From: Paramoeba atlantica
Lineage: Eukaryota > Protista > Discosea
NCBI GenBank assembly: GCA_977017575.1
Contig: CDRNVI010000200.1
Location: 1-64,000 of the forward strand
Reading direction: 5' to 3'
DNA: 64,000 nt
The position numbers and the translations under genes are program-made. Shown here piece after piece: positions 5,160 through 36,157 of this stretch (the stretch's first letter is position 1; every line of letters begins with the position of its first letter). The notes beneath the pieces were generated by a model. The model had not been told where the DNA came from and searched no databases. It was given only the letters and a program-made list of their open reading frames with translations.

Positions 5160-7343
5160 CTCTTTTGAGAACAGACTCTTGTCTTGCTTGGTGATGTAAC
5201 ACAAGCAACTTGGGGGTTTCTAATTCTCTCGAAGAGATTTGGGACCTTTTATTTTTTTTTCTGTCTGGGCGGACAGAAACCAAGATCAAAATCGCTCTTG
5301 AAAGGAATTTGTCCAACGTTTTTTGGGTTTGAAAAATTTAAACTCGAGAATATTCAATCACTCTTCTTAAGGTGCTATTTTTATAACTTTTATCTTTTCG
5401 CTTCTTTTTGCTTTTTTTTTTCTTTTCATTTTTCCCCTCTCTTTTTCTTCTTTCCCTCCTCCTCCCCCTCCCCACCTTCTTTTTTCCCTCCTCATTTTCT
5501 TCCTTTTTCTCAATTTTTTTTTTATTTTCCAAAAGAGAGATTTTGATCAAATTCTTTGTGTGTTTGCGTGCGATTTCGATAATCTCAGAAAAATATGAAA
5601 AAGAAAAACACCACCTCTGCCACCACCACATTTCCTTCTTTCCAGAAAACATGGAACGTATTGAAAAAGACTTTTCATTCTTCCCCTTCATTCTTCCTCT
5701 TTTAATAAAGCTTCGCTTTTTCAAATATCTTTGCAGAGTATTTTTTTTTTGTTTTGTTTTTCTTCCTTCTTCTTCCTGTCTTTGTGCTTCTCATCTCCTT
5801 TGAAAAGATGTTTTCTCTCTCTTCTTTCTCTTTTCTTTCTCTCTTCTTTCTCTCTTCTTTCTCTCTCCTTTCTCTCTTTCTCTCTTTCCTCTCTCTCCCC
5901 TCTCTTTCTCTTTCTCATTTCCTCATTCTCTATTTCCCATTCTCTTTCTCTTTCACTTCACTCTCTCTCCCCTCTCTTTCTCTTTTTGATATTTACTTTC
6001 TTTTCCTTTAAAAAAAGGCTCAGACAATTCAAAAACCATCTGCTGAAGTTCCTTCGATTGGTGAGGGTGTTTTGGCTTTGGCTTGGGTTTTTTTTTTGTT
6101 TTCTTTTTTTTTTGTTATTTTGTTTTTATTTTGTTTTTGTTTTTGTTTTTGTTTTCTTTTTTTTTTATTTCATTTCATTTCTTTTTCTTTTTCTTTTTCT
6201 TTTTCTTTTTCTTTTTCTTTTCTTATTTTTTTTCTTATTTCTTTTCTTGTTTCTTTATTTATTGATAAAAAAACAAAAATTTGTTTTGTTTTGTGTTGTA
6301 TTGTCTTATATTTATTATTATGAATTATTATGAATTACTCTGAATTATTAATTCTTTCTTTCTTTCTTTTATTTTTTTAATTAAATGAATAATTATTTTT
6401 TAAAAAAACAATGTACCAGAACACCCGTCATGTTTAATGGTTGGGACAACTGCAAATCAAAAATTCAATTGATTTTCGTGACTCTCCTTCTACTCTTCCT
6501 TCTTTTGTGGTTCTTTTTTTTTTCTTTTTTTTCTTTCTTTTCATTCTTTTGTGGTTGTTCTCTTCTTCTTCTTCTCTCTCCACAGCCCTTTTCCCCTTTA
6601 TTCTTCTCTTTCTCTCTCTTTCTCTCTTTCTCTCTTTCTCTCTTCTCTCTCTTCTCTCTCCTCTCTCCTCTCTCCTCTCTCCTCCTCTCTCCTCTCTCCT
6701 CCTCTCTCCTCTCCTCTCCTCTCTCCTCTTTTTCTTCTCTTTTTCTTTTCTTTTTCTTCTCCCCTTCTCTCTCCCTCTCTTTCTTTCTTTCTTTTTTTTT
6801 TCAGCATTCCACTCTTTGCTCTTCCACTTGCAAGTCCGAACTTCAATCTTGGAATGACTCTTTTATTGGTTTCTTTTTGACTGCTAATGGTTATCAACTT
6901 AGTGATTGGTCCTTTTATAACAATCTCCACATCGCAAGTCAAAAATTTGGGAAATCAATTCTAGGTGAAAATGGGCCATTGTCTCTTTATTTGACATCAA
7001 CATTGATTCAGCATATGAAGACAACTCATCAGTTTTGCTGATTGATGTTTGTGTGTGTTCAACTCTCCTATTCATTTTTTCATGTGTATTTGAACATTTT
7101 TTGGTTTTTTTTTTATTTTCATTTTTTAATTTTTTTTCAAAAATAAATTTCTTTTTCTTTATTTTTCTTTCTTTTCTTTCTTTTTCTTTCTTTTTCTTTC
7201 TTTTTCTTTCTTTTTCTTTCTTTTCTCTCTTTTTTCAAAAATTATTACCACACCACACCAACAAACCAATACTACAACAACAACAACTCCTGTACCACAT
7301 CACCACAACATGCAAGAAGAGGGAGATGAAGAAGAAAAATGAA
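5160..7343 (+). pseudogene. Probable intron-containing gene or pseudogene, product unknown
   Basis: Complex-sequence islands (about 5260-5370, 5535-5738, 6018-6061, 6410-6510, 6805-7045, 7240-7343) separated by GT..pyrimidine-rich intron-like tracts. Some islands have a stop or apparent frameshift. The last reads ...HHHNMQEEGDEEEK*. Confidence 0.3.
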
Positions 7344-7429
7344 TTCAATATTTTTCCTCTGCTTTTTTCTTCAGGTTTTTTCTTCTCATATTTATTTGTC
7401 CTCCAATTTTTAATCCAAGTTTTCTCTTT

Positions 7430-8353
7430 TGGTTTCTCCACACTGATTTTTTTTCCCAATTTCTCAACTGGTTTCTCAACTGATTTCCCTACCGGATTTC
7501 CCCACTGATTTCTCCCTAACCCCTTTGGTCTCTCTTTCTCTCTCTTTCTCTCTCTCCTCTCTCTCTCTCTTTTTCCTTTCTTCTTTTTTTTTTCTATTTT
7601 CTCCTTTTCTTTTTTCTCAAAATTTACAGAACAAAGATCAACTTCAACATGTGCCCACCTCAAATGTACTTCCTTTTTCTGGGGTTTCCTTTCTTTTCTC
7701 TTCTGATATTTCTTTTTCATTTTTCTCTTCTGTTTTTTCCTTGGTTTTTCCTCCATTTCCCCCCCCCACCCCACTGATTTCTTCTCTTATATTTCTACTG
7801 TAATTCTCCACCAATTTCTCCATCATTTTCTCTGCTGATGTTTCCACTGATTTGTTCACCAATTTCTCTACAATATTTCTCCACCAATTCTTCTATCTTC
7901 AGATCTGATTTTCTTTCTCTGCTGATACCTGCCAATTCCTCCGCCAGTTCCTCTGCAATATCTCTCTGCTTCCTCTCTGGTTTCTTTCTCTCTTTCTCTC
8001 TCTTTATTTTTTCCTTTTCTTTTCTTTTCACACACCACATTTTTTTTTAGCCACCAAAACAACAAAACACGATTTTTTTTAGTTCTTTTTTATTTAGTTC
8101 TTTTTTTTTCACTGCCGCTCCAACAGTGTGTGTTACTCATTTTTTATTTTTTTCTTCCTTTTTTCAGGTTCCCTTTCTTTCTTTTCTTCTTTATTAAAGA
8201 GGTTGTCTTTTTTCCTTTCTTTCTCTTATTAATTTCTCTGCAATATTTCTCCATCAATTCCCTTGCCAATTTGTTCACTAAAATCTTGACCGATTGTTCT
8301 TTAATATTTCTCTGCTTGCTCCCTCTCTCTGGTTTCTTTCTCTCTCTCTTTCT

Positions 8354-8394
<41 letters not shown>

Positions 8395-11300
8395 GATATT
8401 TTGTTCCACTGAACAGAAATAAAAAGATTTTCTGATTCCTTCACCAATCCCTCTGCCAATTATTTCTCTGCTGGTTCCTCTGCCAATTTGTTCACCAATT
8501 TCTCTGCAATATTTTTCTGCCAATTTCTCTGCTGATTTGTTTACCTTTTTTCTCTGCTCCAGATCGAGTTTCTTTCTCTGCTGGTTCCTCCGTCGATTCC
8601 TCTGCCAATTCTTCTGCAATCTTTCTTTGCTTCCTCTCTAGTTTTCTTTCTTTCCTCTTTTTCTTTATTTTTTCCTTTTTTTTTTTCTTTTCACACACCA
8701 CATTTTTTTTAGCCACCAAAACAAAACATGATTTTTTTTAGTTCTTTTTTATTTATTCCTTTTTTTTTCACTGCCACTCCAACAGTGAGTGTTGCTCATT
8801 TCTTTCTTTTTTCTCTCCCTCCCCCCCCATCCATCCTTGATCTTTCTCTCACTTTCATTTTTTCATTAATTTTTCATTCCTTCCTTTCCCTTTCTTTTTT
8901 TTTTTCTTCTTTTCTCTCTTTCCATTCTCTTTTTCTTTTCTCTCTTTTCTCCTTTCCCCTTTCTCTTCTCTCTCTTTTTTAGAACATAAAGCAAAGAACA
9001 AAGATTCAATATTTTGCACATACACATAACACTGCTGGATCTATGAATCGCTTTTTTTTGGGCTCACTATTTCTTCTATTGATCTGTCACCTCAAATTCT
9101 TTTATTCTTTCAAAAAAGGTTTTCTCTTTCTTTCTTTTTATTTTTTTTTGTTACAAATATTTCCTCACTTCTCTCTCTTTTCTTCTCTCTCTTCTGATTT
9201 ATTTCCAATTTCCTTTGTTAATTTCTCCACAATATTTCCCTGTTGATTTCTTTTGGAATTCCTCTTCAATATTTCTTTGCTTGCTCCCTCTCTCTGGTTT
9301 CTTTCTTTCTCTCTTTCTTTTCTCTTTCTCTTTCTCTTTCTCTTTTTCTTTCTCTTTTTTTGATATTTTGTTCCACTGAACAGAAATAAAAAGATTTTCT
9401 GATTTCTTCACCAATCCCAATCTCTCTGCCAATTATTTCTCTGCTGGTTCCTCTGTCAATTTGTTTACCAGTTTCTCTGCAATATTTCTCCACCAATTCC
9501 CCTGCCAAGTTGTTCATCTTTTTTCTCTGTCAATTCCTCTGCAATGTTTCTCTGCCAATTCTTCTATTGATTCTTCTCTCTTTGGTGTGTGTGTTTATCT
9601 TTCTTTCTTTCCTTTCTTTTTTTTTTCTCTTTTTTTTTTATTATTTTATTCTCATTTTCTTTTTTTTTCTCAAAACAAAGAACAAGTTCAAAGTTGCATG
9701 CACACAACACCATGTGTGGGGGGGTGTGTTCTTTTTTTCACCAGTCAAAACACCACAATGTGATTTTTTTTCATGTCCTCTTTTTCACCACTTTGCAACC
9801 TTCTTCCTTTTTTCAGGTTTCTTTTTTTTTGATTTCTTTCTTTGGTTTCTCCCTCAATTTTTTAGTTTTCTTTCTCTCTCTCTCTCTCTCTTTTTTTTTT
9901 TTTTTTTTTTTATTTTTCTCAAAATACAAAACACAGAACAACAATTGTATTCCACCAATTTTTCTTGTGTTGATTTCTCTTGGAATTTCTCCTTTAATTT
10001 TTGTTTACCTTGGTTTTTTTTTTTCTTTCTTTCTCTTTTTCTTTATTTTTCCTTTCTTTTTTCTCAAAAAAAAACACAATTCACAAAGAACAAACCCAAA
10101 ACTCCATTTTTTGTATTTTTCTCTTTCCTCTCCCTCACTGAGTTCTCATTTTTCTTTTAATATTTTCAGATGAATTTTACATAATAGAGAAAATTATCTT
10201 CAGAACACTTTTTTTGTTTTAAAACTTCTCTCACCAAATTCTAAAATGAATTGATTCACAGAAAAGGGTTTCATTTTATTTCTTTCTTTCTCTTTCTCTT
10301 TTCTCTCTTTCAAGTTTTCAAGTTTTTCAATTTGGTTGTTTGTTTGTTGGTTTAGTTAAAAGAAAAATGAATTTTACAGTTTTGGTTTTTCTTTTCTAAC
10401 CACACTTCTTTTTCCTTCCTTTTCTTTTAATTTTTATTATTTTAGTTTCATTCTCTGCTGCTGTTGATTTAGTTTTTGATTTCCTCACTGAGTTTTCTTT
10501 GCTGTTGATTTCTCCACTGATTTTTGTTTTTTGTTGTTTGTTCTCCTCTTCTCCCCTTGAAACCCTCTCTTCTGGTTTTTCTCTCTTTCTTTTCCCTTTC
10601 TTTTTTTTCTTGTCTCATCCTCTCTCTCTTATTAAATTATATTCTTTGTTTCAGTAAAGTGGAAAGAAAAATACAATGATGTTTAATGACTCTTTTCTAG
10701 GTTCAATTTTTTGAATTACTTTTTTCTTTTTTCCTCTCTCTCTCTCTTTTTTCTCTTTTCTTTTTCTTATTTTTTCTTTCAAAATACAGAACAAATAACA
10801 TCATTGAATGAGCTCTCTTCTTGTTGATTTCTCCTCCAATTTCTTTTTTGCTTTCTCTGCTCCCTCTCTCTCTGGTTTCTCTCTCTCTCTCTCTCTATTT
10901 TCTCCCCTGTTTTCTCTCCCTCAAATTTCTCTCCTCTTTTCTTTTTTCTTTGTTCTTTCTCATTTTCTTTCTTTTCAAAATACAGAACAAACAAAAATTA
11001 AAAGTTTTTTTTGTACTGATTGATGTGTATTTATTATTAGATGTTGTGAGATGTTGTGAGATGCTTCTCCAATTTTTCTCACCTGCTTTCTTTTTGATTT
11101 TCTCTGAGCTTTCTCTGCTTTCTGTTCTTGTTTCTGGTTTCTCTTTCTTCCTCTTTCTTTTCTTTTTCTTTTCTTTTCTCTGCTTTCTCCTCTCATTTTC
11201 TTTCTTTTCAATACACAGAAAAACACAAAAAAAAGAAATTTCCTCTCTAATTGAACATTCAAGAGTGTTCACCTCCTTTTTTTCATCACCCCTCCTCTCC
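7430..11300. repeat. 12-bp-period minisatellite within degenerate higher-order repeats
   Basis: Recurrent ttctctgcYaat / ttctccaccaat 12-mers. Shared blocks cacacaccacatttttttagccaccaaaac (about 8030, 8693) and gatattttgttccactgaacagaaataaaaagattttctgatt (about 8395, 9362). Confidence 0.75.
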
Positions 11301-11399
11301 TTTAAGGTTTTTCTCAATTTTTTTTCTTTCTTCTCTCTCTCTTTCTCTCTAAAATACATGTATTTCCTAAAGTGTAGTATGTTTAAATGAATAAGTTTT

Positions 11400-14300
11400 C
11401 TCTTCTCTTTCTTTTTCTTCTCTTTTCTCTTTTCTCTTTTCTCTCTCTTCTCTTTCATTCTTATTAACCTTCTTTGGTACAGAGGAATATTTTTGGGTGG
11501 TTCAAATCTCAAATGAATTAAAATTAATTGTTTCCAAAGTTTCTCCTCTTTTTCTTTTTCTTTTTCTTTTTTTTTCTCTGTTTTTCTTCCCTTTTGATTG
11601 ACTAAAATATCCTTTTTCTTCTTCTCTTTTCTTCTTTTCTCTTTTTCTTCTTCTTTCTTTCTCAGAAAGCATGTATGCACACATGAGAGAAGTTCTTATT
11701 TGTAAATAAATGTTACTGATAATATCAAAAGGGTTATGTTTCTAAGATTTCTCTTCTCTTCTCTTCCCTTCTCTTCTCCTCTCCTCTCCTCTCTCCCTCT
11801 CTCCTCTCTTTTTCTTCTCTTCTCTTCTCTTCTCTTCTCTCTCTTTTTTCTCTTTTTTCTCTTCAAGGAATTATTTTTCTCATCCTTTTTTCTCTTTTCT
11901 TTTTCTCTTTTTTTTTCTTTTCATTTTCTTTCTTTATTCTTTGTTCTTTTCTCTTTTTTCATTCTCTCTTCTCTCTCTCTCTCTCTTTCTTTTCTCTTCT
12001 CTTCTCTTCTCTTTCCACTCTTCATTCTTTAAAATATTTTATTTGATAAAATAGAAAATGAAACTGATGAAATGATTTAATAATTTAATTTCCTTCTCTC
12101 CATAGAGAAAAGGTTTTTTTCTTTTCTTTTTTTTCTTTTTCTATTCTTATTTTTCTTTTTCTCTCTCTCTTTCTTTCTTTCATGCACATAAAACTGAGAA
12201 AAATATATTTCTGAAAAATTAAAAGGTTTTTTTTCTCTCTCTTCTTTCTCTGTTTTTTTTTTTCTTCTCTTCTCTCCTCTCTTCTCCTCTCCTCTCCTCT
12301 CCTCTCCTCTCCTTTTTTCTTATTTTTATTTTTATTTTTATTTTTGTTTTTTAATATTTTTTGTCCTACTGAACAAAAAGAAAAATGTTTTCTTTGGTTT
12401 TTTCTCATTTTTTTATTTTTATTTTCTCTTCTTTCAATTTCTTTTCTTTTAAATCTTTGTTTGATTCATTACTCCTTACTTTTAAATTGGACTCTATTCT
12501 TGTTCTCTTTTTTTCTGGTTTTTTCTTTTTTCTCTCTCTCTTCTCTTTCTCTTTCTTTTTCTTTCTCTCCACCAAAAATAATCTTAGTTCTTTTCCTTCT
12601 TCTCTCTTCTCTCTCTTTTCTCTCTTTTCTCTTTTCTTCTTTCTCTTCTCTCTCTTCTCTCTCTTCTTCCCTCTTCTCTCTCTCTTCTCTCTCTTTCCTC
12701 TTCCCCTCTTCCTCCTTCTCTCTTTTTTCTTCCTTTTCTTTCTTTCTTTTTCTTTCTTTTTCTTTTCCCCTTTTTTTCTTTCTCTCTCTTTCTCTCTTTC
12801 TTCTCTTTTTCTTTCATTCTTCTTTCTCTCTCTCTCTCTCTCTCTCTCTCAGATTTGAATTTGGAGATCAATCTTTTTTGGTGCCTCTTGCAAAAAGTAT
12901 GAATGTGTTTATGATTCTGAAATGCAATATTTATGAAGGTCTTTTCTCTTTCTCTCTCTCTTTCTCTTTTTTCTTTTTTCTTTCTCTTTTTTCTTTCTCT
13001 TTCTTCTTTCTTCTTTTTTCTTTCTTCTTTTTTCTTTCTTCTTCTCTTTTCTCTCCCTCTCCCTCTCTTGATTTTTTATTTTCTTGAGTGTGTATGTTTA
13101 AATTAACAAATTTTCTCTTTTCTTTCTTTTTCTTCTTTTTTCTCTCTTCTCTTTTTTCTCTTCTCTTCTCTTCTCTTCTCTTCTTTGTTCTCTCTATTTC
13201 TCTTCTCTTTTTCTTCTTATCTCTTTCTTCTCTTCTCTTCTCTTCTCTTCTCTTCTCTTCTCTTCTCTTCTCTTCTCTTCTCTTCTCTTTTCTCCTCTTC
13301 TCAAGGGATTATTTTTCTAATCCTCTTTTCTCTTTTTTTCCCTTCCTCTCCTCTCCCCCTAATCTCTTCTCTCTTTTCTTTTTCTCCAGATGTGTATGCA
13401 ACAAAGAGAATATTAACTGAGGTGGGGATTGTTTTTAGTGGAGAAGTGACTCTCCTGGTTCTTTTTTTCTCTCTTTCTTTCTCCTCTTCCTCTCCTCTTC
13501 CTCTCCTCTTCCTCCTCTTTCTCCTCTCTCTCCCTCTCTCCCTCTCCCCTCTCCCCTCTCCCCTCTCTCCTCTCTTTCCTCTCTTTCTTTTCTCTTTAAA
13601 ATAATAAATAATAATAATAATTTTCTTATAGAATGTGTGTGAACCACCCTAAACCCTTATCTTCTGTTTTGAAGCATAAGGATTGGTCTTTTCAAGTTAA
13701 AAAAGCAATAGTTCTTTTCTCTCTTCTCTCTTTCTGTTCTCTTTTTGTTCTCTTCTCTCTTTCTTTCTCTTTTTTTTCTCTCTCTCTTCTCTTTTCTTTT
13801 CTTTTCTTCTCTCTTTTCTCTTTTCTTCTTTTTTCTTTTCTTTTTCTCTTTTTCTTTCAGTCAATAACAAAAAAATAAAATAGATTCTGATTAATAAAAT
13901 CAGAGGAGAAAGATATCATCATAGTATTACAACAAGGTTTTTTTTAATTTTCTCTTTCTTTCTCTCTTTTTCTTTCTTTTTTCTCTTTTTTTTTTCTTTC
14001 TTTTTCTTTCTTTTTCTTTCTTTTTCTTTTTCTTTCTCTTTTTCTTTCTCTCTTTCCTCTTCCCCTCTCTTTCTTTCTCTCTTCTCTTTTCCTCCTTCTC
14101 TCTTTTTTTTTTTCATAATGGTTCTCACTTTTCTTTCTTTTTTCTTTTTCTTTTCTCTTTTTTCTTTCTCTCTCTTTCCCTCTTTCTCTCTCTCTTCTCT
14201 TTTTCTTTCTTTCTTTTTTCTCTCTCTCTCTCTTTCTTAGATTTGAATTTGGAAATCAATTTTTTTTTAGTGCAAAAAGTATGAATGTGCTTATGATTCT

Positions 14301-15110
14301 GAAATGCAATATTTATAAAGGTCTTTTCTCTCTCTCATCTTTCTCTTTCTCTCTTTCTCTTTCTTCTTTCTCTTTTTCTCTTTCTTCTTTCTTCTTTTTT
14401 CTTCTTTTTTCTTTTCTTTTTCTTTTCTTCTTTTCTTTTTTTTTTTTTTTTTCCTTTTTAATTCACTTTCATTGAATATGATAATATGGTATTTTTGTGA
14501 GTTTTTTCTTTTTCAACTTTCTTAAACACAAAAAAGACAATAATACAGAAAGGTTTTTTTTTTCTTTCTCTTCTTTTTTTTCTTTTTTCTTTTTTCTTTT
14601 TTTTTTGAGATACTTTTTATTTAAGTGAATCATTAATCCTTCCCTACCCACCTTGAATTTGATGCTCTTTTTCTCTCTCTCTCTCTGTGTGTGTATGTGT
14701 GTTCTCTTCACATTGATTGATTATTGGTTTTTCTTTCTTTCTTTTTCTTTCTTTTTTTTTCTCTCTTCTTTTCTTTTCTTCTCCTTTTTCTCTCCAATGC
14801 TCTCTCTTTCTCCCTTTCTTTTCTTTCTTTCTTTTTCTTTTTTTCTCACTTAAATTCTCTTTTTCATTTTATTCCAGGATTTGTGAAATATCTTTTTAAT
14901 CTTCAAAAAGATTCAGTTTTCATTTCAATAATTCTGTGCACAATACACAACACTCCTCTTCATTTCAAAGGAGGTAACAATTTAATTCTTTTTCTTTTTT
15001 TTTCTTTTTCTTTCTCTCTTCTATCTTCTCTTTCTTTTTCTCTTCTCTCTTCTCTTCTCTTTTTCTCTTTTTCTCTTTCTCTTTTTTTTTCTTTTTTTCT
15101 TTCTATTCCT
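11400..15110 (+). repeat. CT-microsatellite-rich region with duplicated AG..GT-bounded pseudo-exons
   Basis: Near-identical ~90-bp blocks ag|atttgaatttgga...tatttatRaag|gt at about 12852-12940 and 14241-14320. Other exon-like islands at about 13390-13457 and 13632-13710. Confidence 0.55.
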
Positions 15111-33480: not shown

Positions 33481-33855
33481 TCTTATTCTTTCTCTCTCTC
33501 TCTCCAAACCAAACAACTCACACCCAAAAACTGACAACACAACACGAATGCCTTCCCAAACCCAAAAAAAAAAAACAAAAAAAAATTGTTGCCAAAAAAG
33601 CTGTTTCTGTTTTCTGTTTGTTGGATGGAATATTCTTGTCGATTCTTGAATTTCTTTTTTGTGAAATAAATAGTACACTTTCCCAGAGGATTTTGATTCA
33701 TTTTTTTCTTAATTTTATGACAGAACAATTCAATCGCCTGACAATCGAGTTTCAAATGGGTCTCTGACCCGATCGATCAAAAAAGATTCCTTTAACTCTT
33801 CAAACCACAAGAAATAAATCGTTAACAAGAGGAGAAGAACAAGGAGAAGAAACAG

Positions 33856-34773
33856 TCAGCCTTTTTTTGGGATCAGACTTTTGTGGATATGAGGGATGAT
33901 ACCACCTGGAAGGAAGGAAAGAAAATCAATTACAATAAAAAAGGTGGGGAGGCGAAACTTTTTCAAATTCCAAACCATTTGAGATGTAACCCTGACATAA
34001 AGTATCAAGTTCTTCATCTCCACGAATAGCCAAAAGGATATGGCGTGGAGTAATTCTCTTTACTTTCAAGTCTTTTGCTGCATTTCCAGCAAGTTCCAAT
34101 ATTTCTGCCGACTACCCAAAAAACAAAACAAAAAAAAATAATTAGAAAAAGAAAAGAAAAAAAAAAAAAAAGGAAAAAATCACAAACGAGATACTCCAGG
34201 ACAGCAGAAACATAAACAGGAGCACTACCACCAACACGAGAATTGGTCACTTTCTTCATCAAAGTATGAAATCTTCCAACAGGAAATTGAAGACCAGCCC
34301 TTTTTGATCGACTTCCCCCATCAGTTACCTTGATACAAATCAAAATTTAAATGAGAAGAAGGAGGAGAATAAGAAGAATATAGGATCTCGATGTGATTAT
34401 CCAAAGAGAGAGAAGAGATTTTTCAAACCCAACATCAACCCACCACGACAAAAAAAAGAAAGAGAAAAATGAATAGAACCCTTGACTCGAATCTACGGAC
34501 AGCTTTTGTCCCTTCAGAAACGGCATGTTTCGCTAATTCACCAGGCATGATTAGTCTGACAGCAGTCTGAATTTCCCTTGATGTGATGGTTGTCTTCAGA
34601 TGCAAATCTTTCAACTGGACAGCGTCCAGTAAGAGCTTGTTAAAGATCTCATTAACAATATCGTTTACCACTTCCATTCCTTTTGAACTTATCCCAGTGT
34701 GTGGGTGCACTTGTTTCAGAACAAGGTAGATATAAGTGTGGAATCTTCTTTGTTTCCGAAGCCTTTGAGCCAT
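33856..34773 (-). CDS. Single-chain histone H2B-H2A.Z doublet (predicted 206 aa, 4 exons)
   Basis: Exons 34773-34480 (98 aa H2B fold: [47 protein letters not shown]), 34328-34188 ([25 protein letters not shown]), 34111-33976 ([33 protein letters not shown]) and 33905-33856 ([16 protein letters not shown]). All introns are GT-AG and frame-preserving. Confidence 0.85.
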
Positions 34774-34843
34774 TTTTCTTCTTTTCTGTTTGGCAGATTC
34801 GGCTGAAGAGTTTGGCAAACCAACCAACAAAATCAGCAAATGA

Positions 34844-34877
34844 AAGGGGACACCTTCCTTTTTAAGGGGACACCTTC
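34844..34877. promoter_or_regulatory. Duplicated 14-bp motif in the ~190-bp divergent intergenic gap
   Basis: AAGGGGACACCTTC at 34844-34857 and 34864-34877 (20-bp period), between the histone ATG (34773, -) and the cyclase ATG (34966, +). Confidence 0.35.
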
Positions 34878-34965
34878 TTTTTTCTTGGTTTCTTTTCTTT
34901 CCTTCTTCTCTTTCCTTCTTCTCTCTCCTTCTTCTCTTTCTTTCTTCTCTTTTTTGAAGGAGAAA

Positions 34966-36157
34966 ATGATGTGGAAGAGAAAATCTTTCTTTTTTCTCTT
35001 TCTTTTCATCCTATTTGAAAAACAAATTTTGGCAAAATCAGAAGATAGAAAAGAAAAAGAAAGAGAAGATGGTTTGATTGTGTCTTATGTAGTAGACAAA
35101 ACTTTTCCTCATGATTCTTCTGCTTTTACACAAGGCATTTTTCTTGATCCTTTTGATCCTTCTTATTTTTATGAAGGTTTTTTTCTTTTTCTTTTTTCTA
35201 TTTTATTTTTTTTGATTTTTTTGATTTTGCTTTAAACATAATAATCCCCTTTCTCTTTCTCATTTCTCTTTTCTCTTTTTCTCTTTTCAGGAACTGGAAT
35301 GTATGGAGAGAGTGCTTTAAGAAAAGTGAATGTTGGGACAGGAAAAGTATGGAAACAACGAAAGATTGATCAACGCCACTTTGGAGAAGGAATTGCCTTT
35401 CATAAAGGGAATATTTATCAACTTACTTGGAGAGAGAAATTCATTTATCGATATTCAATGAAGGAAAGCAACGAGTTTTGACTCTTTTTTTTTTCTCTTT
35501 TGGATATTTTTTCTTTTATTTTTTCTTTTATTTTTTCTTTTATTTTTTCTTTTATTTTTTCTTTTATTTTTCTTTTCTTTTTTTCTTTTTATTTTTTTCT
35601 TTTATTTTTCCTCCTTCTTCTCGTAACAAGAGTCTCTCTTTTAAAAAAGGTGGGTCAAGAAAAAACGAGAAATATTTAAAGGCCCTGGCTTCCTAAAAGA
35701 AGGATGGGGTTTAACATCAGATGGAAATTACCTCATTGCCTCAGAAGGAACCTCAAAATTATATTTTTTCACAATCGAAGAAGGAGAAAGAGATTCTGTC
35801 TTGGCCAAAACTTTAACTGTGAAACTGAACGAGAAACCCATCTCTCTCTTGAATGAGTTGGAGTATATTGGAGGGTATATTTGGGCAAACGTCTGGTATT
35901 CCACTCGAATCTACATCATTGATCCCCAAACTGGAAAAGTTGTTCTTTTCATTGAAGCTGAAAATCTTAAAACTACTGGCGATGTGCTCAATGGGATTGC
36001 GTATGATCCTTCGAATGATCTTTTGTATTTGACTGGTAAATATTGGCCAAATGTTTATTCTGTCCGCTTGATTTGTTCAAATGGTAAAATTCCAAAACCT
36101 ATTTCAGACATTGTTTCGATTTGTACTGCACATTCTTGGAAGGAGGATGAGCTTTAA
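34966..36157 (+). CDS. Glutaminyl-peptide cyclotransferase, plant/bacterial type (Glu_cyclase_2)
   Basis: [69 protein letters not shown]; N-terminal signal-like segment; C-terminal KEDEL. Confidence 0.92.

Follow-up and report, generated by a model that had tools for sequence, protein, structure and literature searches.

A spliced mRNA of Paramoeba atlantica carries H2B-variant and H2A.Z histone folds in one open reading frame

Can a cellular eukaryote make an H2B and an H2A.Z as a single polypeptide, and what would such a chain do in chromatin? The question is raised by a locus on the minus strand of a 64-kb stretch of Paramoeba atlantica DNA (the window, by which we mean the whole of the stretch analysed), where an H2B reading frame without a stop is followed by an H2A.Z reading frame without a start. 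In the literature on how nucleosomes originated, histone fusion counts as a feature of viruses and archaea, and papers from 2022–2024 regard it as unconfirmed in eukaryotes: no fused doublets were confirmed by Talbert et al. 2022 (PMC9145170), whose inspected candidates keep their own starts and stops, and PMC11222145 and PMC10919886 take the same position. The first-pass annotation of this DNA, made from its letters alone, had singled out the fusion, and these papers bear out that it is unusual for eukaryotes; here a cellular eukaryote expresses one. We put the probability at roughly 0.8 that the locus is a real, expressed nuclear gene for a natural single-chain H2B variant–H2A.Z doublet, the chain of which folds as a handshake pair and is placed in nucleosomes.

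The gene is distributed over four exons. Exon 1 (34480–34773) comprises the ATG and 98 codons of a tail-less H2B variant without a stop, as identified by its translation, by Pfam family PF00125 and by matches to H2B chains in the PDB; its last codon is AGG (...FESR), and the GT of the donor follows directly at 34479. Intron 1 (34329–34479; 151 nt, GT..AG, phase 0) lies between the H2B and H2A.Z parts, and exon 2 (34188–34328) opens in phase 0 after the AG at 34330–34329 with the connector VTDGG, which leads into the H2A αN and α1 helices, a shortened L1 loop and the start of α2 (PDB H2A matches at E ~2e-12). The T-rich intron 2 (34112–34187; 76 nt, GT..AG) is followed by exon 3 (33976–34111), the translation of which covers α2, L2, α3 and the start of the docking domain of H2A.Z, and then by intron 3 (33906–33975; 70 nt, GT..AG, phase 1), for which the donor supported by RNA is the GT at 33975. 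The coding part of exon 4 ends with a TGA stop (33856–33905, with the TGA at 33858–33856). The spliced coding sequence of 621 nt specifies 206 amino acids and the stop, and the product has a computed mass of 22.9 kDa and a pI of 10.15. No second copy of either the H2B or the H2A half is present within the 64-kb window.

If the H2B frame is continued into intron 1, it adds 14 hydrophobic residues and then meets a TGA, and a TAA in frame with the H2A part stands inside the same intron at 34349–34347. Within the H2A part, the frame contains a single ATG, at 34259, which lies inside helix α1 of the H2A fold (the Met of ...TLMKK...), and the ATGs at 34435 and 34321 are not in the H2A frame. The 5′ UTR extends at least over 34774–34816, as judged from the RNA contigs that start at 34816 (X1) and 34776 (X4), and it contains no upstream ATG, the H2B start being the first AUG of the assembled mRNA. 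The 3′ UTR covers 33750–33855 and reaches at least 66 nt below 33750, where the 836-nt X1 contig is placed up to record position 770. The anatomy is thus the one that the first-pass annotation had drawn: a 98-codon H2B that reaches the donor as ...FESR with no stop and with almost no N-terminal tail (M1 corresponds to about residue 28 of human H2B), a 151-nt phase-0 intron that the RNA contigs skip, an H2A half that lacks a start ATG of its own and has a TAA just upstream, and two further introns (34187–34112 and 33975–33906) that complete a product of 206 residues.

The locus was found in four runs of one organism, which were aligned over 33750–34880. Two are RNA from independent studies, namely X1 (2015, study P1) and X4 (2023, study P2), while X2 is long-read DNA with contigs of up to 228 kb and X3 is Hi-C. 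Each RNA run holds a single contig (836 nt in X1, 745 nt in X4) that spans the message from 5′ UTR to 3′ UTR, lacks all three introns and shows 0 mismatches and 0 gaps; as assembled contigs, these represent the main transcript forms, rare isoforms dropping out, so that a minor transcript of H2A.Z or H2B alone could escape detection. The aligned pieces, which are contiguous in the records, run from 34816 (X1) or 34776 (X4) to 34478, from 34326 to 34188, from 34111 to 33974 and from 33903 to 33750. The joints listed for them skip 151 nt (34478/34326, cut +2) and 70 nt (33903/33974, cut +2), with CT..AC on the plus strand corresponding to GT..AG on the strand of the gene. Intron 2 falls in a stretch masked as repetitive, and its junction is read from the adjacent record positions 478/479 (X1) and 438/439 (X4), at which the pieces 34188–34326 and 33974–34111 adjoin. 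Conversely, the DNA contigs of X2 and X3 retain intron 3, and part of intron 1 (34395–34479) is covered by an X3 contig. Because X2 and X3 carry intron sequence and the joined form occurs only in the RNA-type runs, the introns are features of the genome; and because the RNA contigs confirm all three junctions, the arrangement is not a chance one. The 34480/34328 junction, for which the first-pass annotation had proposed an RNA check, is present in both contigs at 100% identity together with the two downstream junctions, and the single spliced mRNA for a tail-reduced H2B–H2A.Z chain that it had foreseen is what these contigs represent. One mRNA carries one open reading frame across the H2B and H2A.Z folds.

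The same contigs bear on whether the two halves might instead be expressed separately, with H2A.Z obtaining its start through a trans-spliced leader or an upstream exon that escaped notice, joined at the acceptor at 34329 and the cis-spliced form arising as a by-product. Such a leader, if it ended in ATG, would be in frame, exon 2 being in phase 0. However, neither RNA contig shows a leader sequence or any other loose end joined at 34328, the window has many introns and carries genes on either strand, and its histones do not resemble those of kinetoplastids. Moreover, H2B would still be without a stop and would end in the 14-residue hydrophobic read-through. We therefore regard separate expression as extremely improbable.

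Loose ends are present in the Hi-C run, at 33871, 34311, 34395 and 34648, and could be taken for different 5′ exons or a different C-terminus. Each of the four coincides with a fill-in ligation motif (GATC or GANTC), so that they are Hi-C junctions and not splice variants, and these readings were rejected. The X3 piece that starts at 34395 differs by one letter from the window, and the ligation motif at 34395 requires that letter. Given the GATC or GANTC at each of the other three loose ends, we read the difference, which falls in intron 1, as creating a GATC within 34395–34398, presumably through a heterozygous or strain SNP. This letter is the only polymorphism seen at the histone locus.

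An annotation artefact can be rejected here. The mis-annotated fusions discussed in PMC9145170 place H2B before H2A in the database entry, as does the Paramoeba gene; in these, however, both histones have a start and a stop of their own and the fusion is an error of prediction, whereas in Paramoeba there is no stop after H2B, no N-terminal ATG for H2A.Z, and a junction in the RNA contigs of two studies. An example of such an entry is P0251 (164 aa), the sole match with both H2B-like and H2A-like parts in an exhaustive HMMER search of 1.84 billion representatives: it consists of a complete canonical H2B and the last ~40 residues of a canonical H2A, and it was set aside as an artefact. Neither this search nor a word-indexed protein search (query, a 134-aa stop-free frame; admitted lengths, 74–234 aa) returned an orthologue of the fusion, nor did they return the fusion protein itself or a relative of its H2B part above 67% identity. 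A metagenome scan with the H2B part yielded only ordinary H2B genes (56–66% identity), and wherever H2B and H2A occurred together at a metagenomic eukaryotic locus they formed the usual divergent H2A/H2B pair (47 of 47 loci). Such a fusion is likewise not mentioned in a 2026 survey of histone gene organisation, by Grau-Bove et al., or by Marinov and Lynch, in whose work histones of P. atlantica served as outgroups.

The exon 1 product is recognized by PF00125 at 38.2 bits (cutoff 26.4) and matches PDB H2B chains at E ~4e-32, with residues 4–97 corresponding to residues 31–123 of human H2B. As the alignment starts at human residue 31, the N-terminal tail of ~30 residues is absent; the basic stretch before α1 is kept, and the H2B part ends one residue before the normal H2B C-terminus. 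In an alignment with 90 canonical H2Bs the H2B motifs are intact, KQVHP.TGISSK among them, and identity to the consensus is 57%, with 17 differences at positions that are at least 85% conserved. Most of the changes are located in α2 and L2 (I61V, M62V, S64D, F65I, D68E, E71N, A74L, E76D, Y83L, N84H and K85L, human numbering), and others are found at the end of αC (T119R, K120R and T122E). The absence of the long basic N-tail, together with the replacement of K120 by Arg and the changes at T119 and T122, identifies the H2B part as a variant rather than a canonical H2B. The residue K120 is the site of mono-ubiquitylation, and in established nucleosome structures the C-terminal part of α2, together with α3, makes up the four-helix bundle with H4.

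The H2A part clearly belongs to H2A.Z in its C-terminal half, as judged by similarity to solved structures. H2A.Z and H2A.V account for all of the best 20 structure matches of exon 3 (61–64 bits), the best other H2A reaching 47.6 bits, and exon 3 is ~79% identical to human H2A.Z; α2, L2, α3 and the docking domain are accordingly of H2A.Z type in these matches, and the H2A.Z signatures pointed out at first reading hold in the comparison. Exon 2 is less diagnostic and scores slightly better with canonical H2A than with H2A.Z. The L1 loop of H2A.Z is one residue longer than that of H2A. In the fusion, this loop falls one residue short of that of H2A and two short of that of H2A.Z. The fusion has neither an H2A.Z-type L1 nor an acetylatable N-tail, the tail being replaced by the H2B part and VTDGG. 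By contrast, the acidic-patch residues, the DNA-contact arginines and the H2A.Z docking region are kept.

A close likeness to this architecture is found in laboratory constructs. Engineered H2B–H2A.Z chimeras in the PDB (2jss, 4m6b, 5chl, 4nft and 6k0c; 192–209 aa) have the same order of halves, have both N-tails removed and are similar in size to the 206-residue natural chain, and in both cases the H2B αC helix is joined almost directly to the residues that precede H2A.Z αN. The human chain of Mao et al. 2014 (PMC3975505), in which H2B residues 33–125 are joined to H2A.Z residues 16–114, superimposes on the nucleosomal dimer with an RMSD of 0.83. Measured from the H2B "AV" to the H2A "RAGLQ", the connector is 15 residues long in the natural chain and ~13 in the engineered human construct, and the resemblance to engineered single chains that the first-pass annotation had pointed to is borne out by the PDB chimeras and by PMC3975505. 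The engineered proteins are constructs for structural work, whereas the natural fusion is genomic, joined across an intron and transcribed in vivo; it also differs from them in its divergent H2B and its shortened L1 loop. Structural biology thereby gains a naturally evolved single-chain H2A.Z–H2B.

Further single-chain histones of comparable design are those of giant viruses, comprising the Marseilleviridae H-beta/H-alpha doublets, two further doublets (L084 and L086) and a triplet (L088). As in the fusion, two histone folds, H2B and H2A, share one polypeptide with H2B first, and N-tails and connectors are short; the distance from "AV" to "RAGLQ" is 17–18 residues in L084, L086 and L088. The 15-residue join of the fusion lies between these and the ~13 of the engineered form, and the architecture is therefore convergent with both. 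In contrast to the fusion, which has three introns and stands among cellular genes, the viral doublets are viral and intron-less, and their H2A part is not H2A.Z. Each a true H2B–H2A doublet, L084 and L086 come from short GVMAG contigs of 5.8 and 6.4 kb that were binned as viral. The triplet (L088:2001-2606, on an IMG/VR contig of 44.7 kb) encodes H2B–H2A–H3, and its H2A part ends ...GGGVLPYIHKSLRPKKG; this C-terminus is H2A.Z-like and close to the C-terminal end of the Paramoeba fusion.

The first-pass annotation had further suggested that the gene might be relevant to the origin or exchange of the viral doublets, which the comparisons do not support, since the halves are nearer to eukaryotic H2B and H2A (56–67% identity) than to giant-virus doublets (44–54%). 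In the H2B tree, the fusion falls within the starred set of 24 rows, the other 23 of which are eukaryotic, on a very long branch. By the AU test on this tree, grouping the fusion with the viral doublets is not rejected (p = 0.48), an outcome that reflects the long branches and the mere 123 columns kept. On these alignments, a viral relationship of the fusion is unsupported, although not refuted. It probably originated, independently of the viral doublets, from a copy of H2B that settled upstream of an H2A.Z gene and took the place of its first exon, and how easily doublets arise by such exon joining becomes a testable question.

If the 22.9-kDa chain behaves like the engineered single-chain constructs, it would fold as an intramolecular H2B/H2A.Z histone-fold pair and would enter nucleosomes as an obligate 1:1 H2A.Z–H2B variant dimer, with both stoichiometry and choice of partner fixed covalently. 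A nucleosomal role is suggested by the acidic patch, the DNA-binding arginines, the basic stretch and the docking region, all of which are retained. As both N-tails and the H2B K120 site are gone, the dimer would escape tail acetylation and H2B ubiquitylation, and the effect on chromatin of an H2A.Z without tail acetylation coupled to an H2B without ubiquitylation can now be asked experimentally. In addition, the changes on the α2/L2 surface of H2B (Y83L, N84H, K85L, E76D and A74L) suggest an altered contact with H4, and this surface may demand, or tolerate, an altered H4.

The shortened L1 loop and the loss of Y83 and K120 of H2B could also be explained by a non-nucleosomal role or by decay. 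In the former case, the fusion would be made but would act as a soluble decoy or store that occupies H2A.Z chaperones and remodelers (SWR1/YL1/Chz1-type), or would have another role away from chromatin. Tail-less single-chain H2B–H2A.Z indeed binds such chaperones in vitro (the PDB chimeras; PMC3975505), and both L1 and the H4-facing surface of H2B are altered in the fusion. Against a decoy stands the retention of what a nucleosomal protein requires, namely the acidic patch, the arginines that contact DNA and the docking domain; moreover, nucleosome-like particles have been obtained with fused Xenopus histones (PMC11222145) and with viral doublets, those of Marseillevirus among them (PMC8357426). 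We consider a decoy or storage function unlikely, and how SWR1-type exchange and histone chaperones would handle a covalent dimer is a question open to direct test.

In the latter case, the gene would be a young chimera without function, in which a duplicated H2B came to precede a copy of H2A.Z and the conjoined transcript is tolerated while the sequence decays. The many changes at otherwise invariant H2B positions and the very long branch would fit such decay, as would the lack of any orthologue or closer relative in the searched databases. Against decay, the frame is intact across four exons and three introns, the most conserved motifs are unchanged, both tails are cut back exactly to the structured core, and the fusion is the dominant assembled form in both RNA data sets, which are separated by eight years. 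A functionless chimera is accordingly rather less probable still than a decoy, and the expressed, nucleosomal doublet remains our preferred reading.

A natural parallel for an obligate pair of this kind is provided by the double-variant nucleosomes of other protists, in which H2A.Z is combined with H2B.Z in Apicomplexa and with H2B.V in trypanosomes. These have a dedicated, divergent H2B for H2A.Z and represent the nearest natural functional analogue; they are, however, encoded by separate genes as separate proteins with long, modifiable tails, whereas in Paramoeba the tails are gone and a similar pairing would be enforced by a peptide bond. More tentatively, and with a good deal less confidence than we place in the doublet itself, the fusion may be a functional nucleosome component and the first confirmed doublet of a cellular eukaryote, possibly the main or only H2A.Z of the cell, which may pair with a variant H4 in a dedicated nucleosome devoid of tail and K120 modification; it would then represent an independent re-invention of the viral design and a counter-example to the ratchet proposed in PMC11222145, by which, for example, dependence on N-tails or on histone variants makes fusion incompatible with eukaryotic chromatin. 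The Paramoeba fusion bears on that proposal in that it involves a histone variant and its tails have been trimmed away.

The genes that surround the fusion encode RasGEF, TPR/RA, M28 peptidase, tyrosine phosphatase and BIG2-type ArfGEF proteins; they are found on either strand and are divided into exons, and since these neighbours carry ordinary cellular domains and introns, the context of the fusion is cellular. A protein 98% identical to the M28 peptidase is encoded on a further contig, L089 (ENA ERZ24900291 ctg3121l, 30.9 kb), the best named relatives of the peptidase being from Paramoeba aestuarina (44%) and Arcella (41%). L089, on which a RasGEF gene and another with faint TPR/RA matches are also found, probably represents the other haplotype or a closely related strain, and it stops ~3.5 kb before the expected position of the histone gene.

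No Rfam family scores above threshold in the 64-kb window, so that no histone 3′ stem-loop was detected. Directly upstream of the histone gene, a divergent ORF on the plus strand (34840–35235) has a weak match to the glutaminyl-cyclase family PF05096 (E 0.002, which falls short of the curated cutoff); only ~25 nt separate its start from the 5′ end mapped for the histone mRNA, an arrangement that suggests a shared bidirectional promoter. Elsewhere in the window, ~9 kb of the plus strand (5800–14500) is almost pure polypyrimidine, TC-rich with many degenerate TC/TTCTC arrays and with GC skew and AT skew both at about −0.5.
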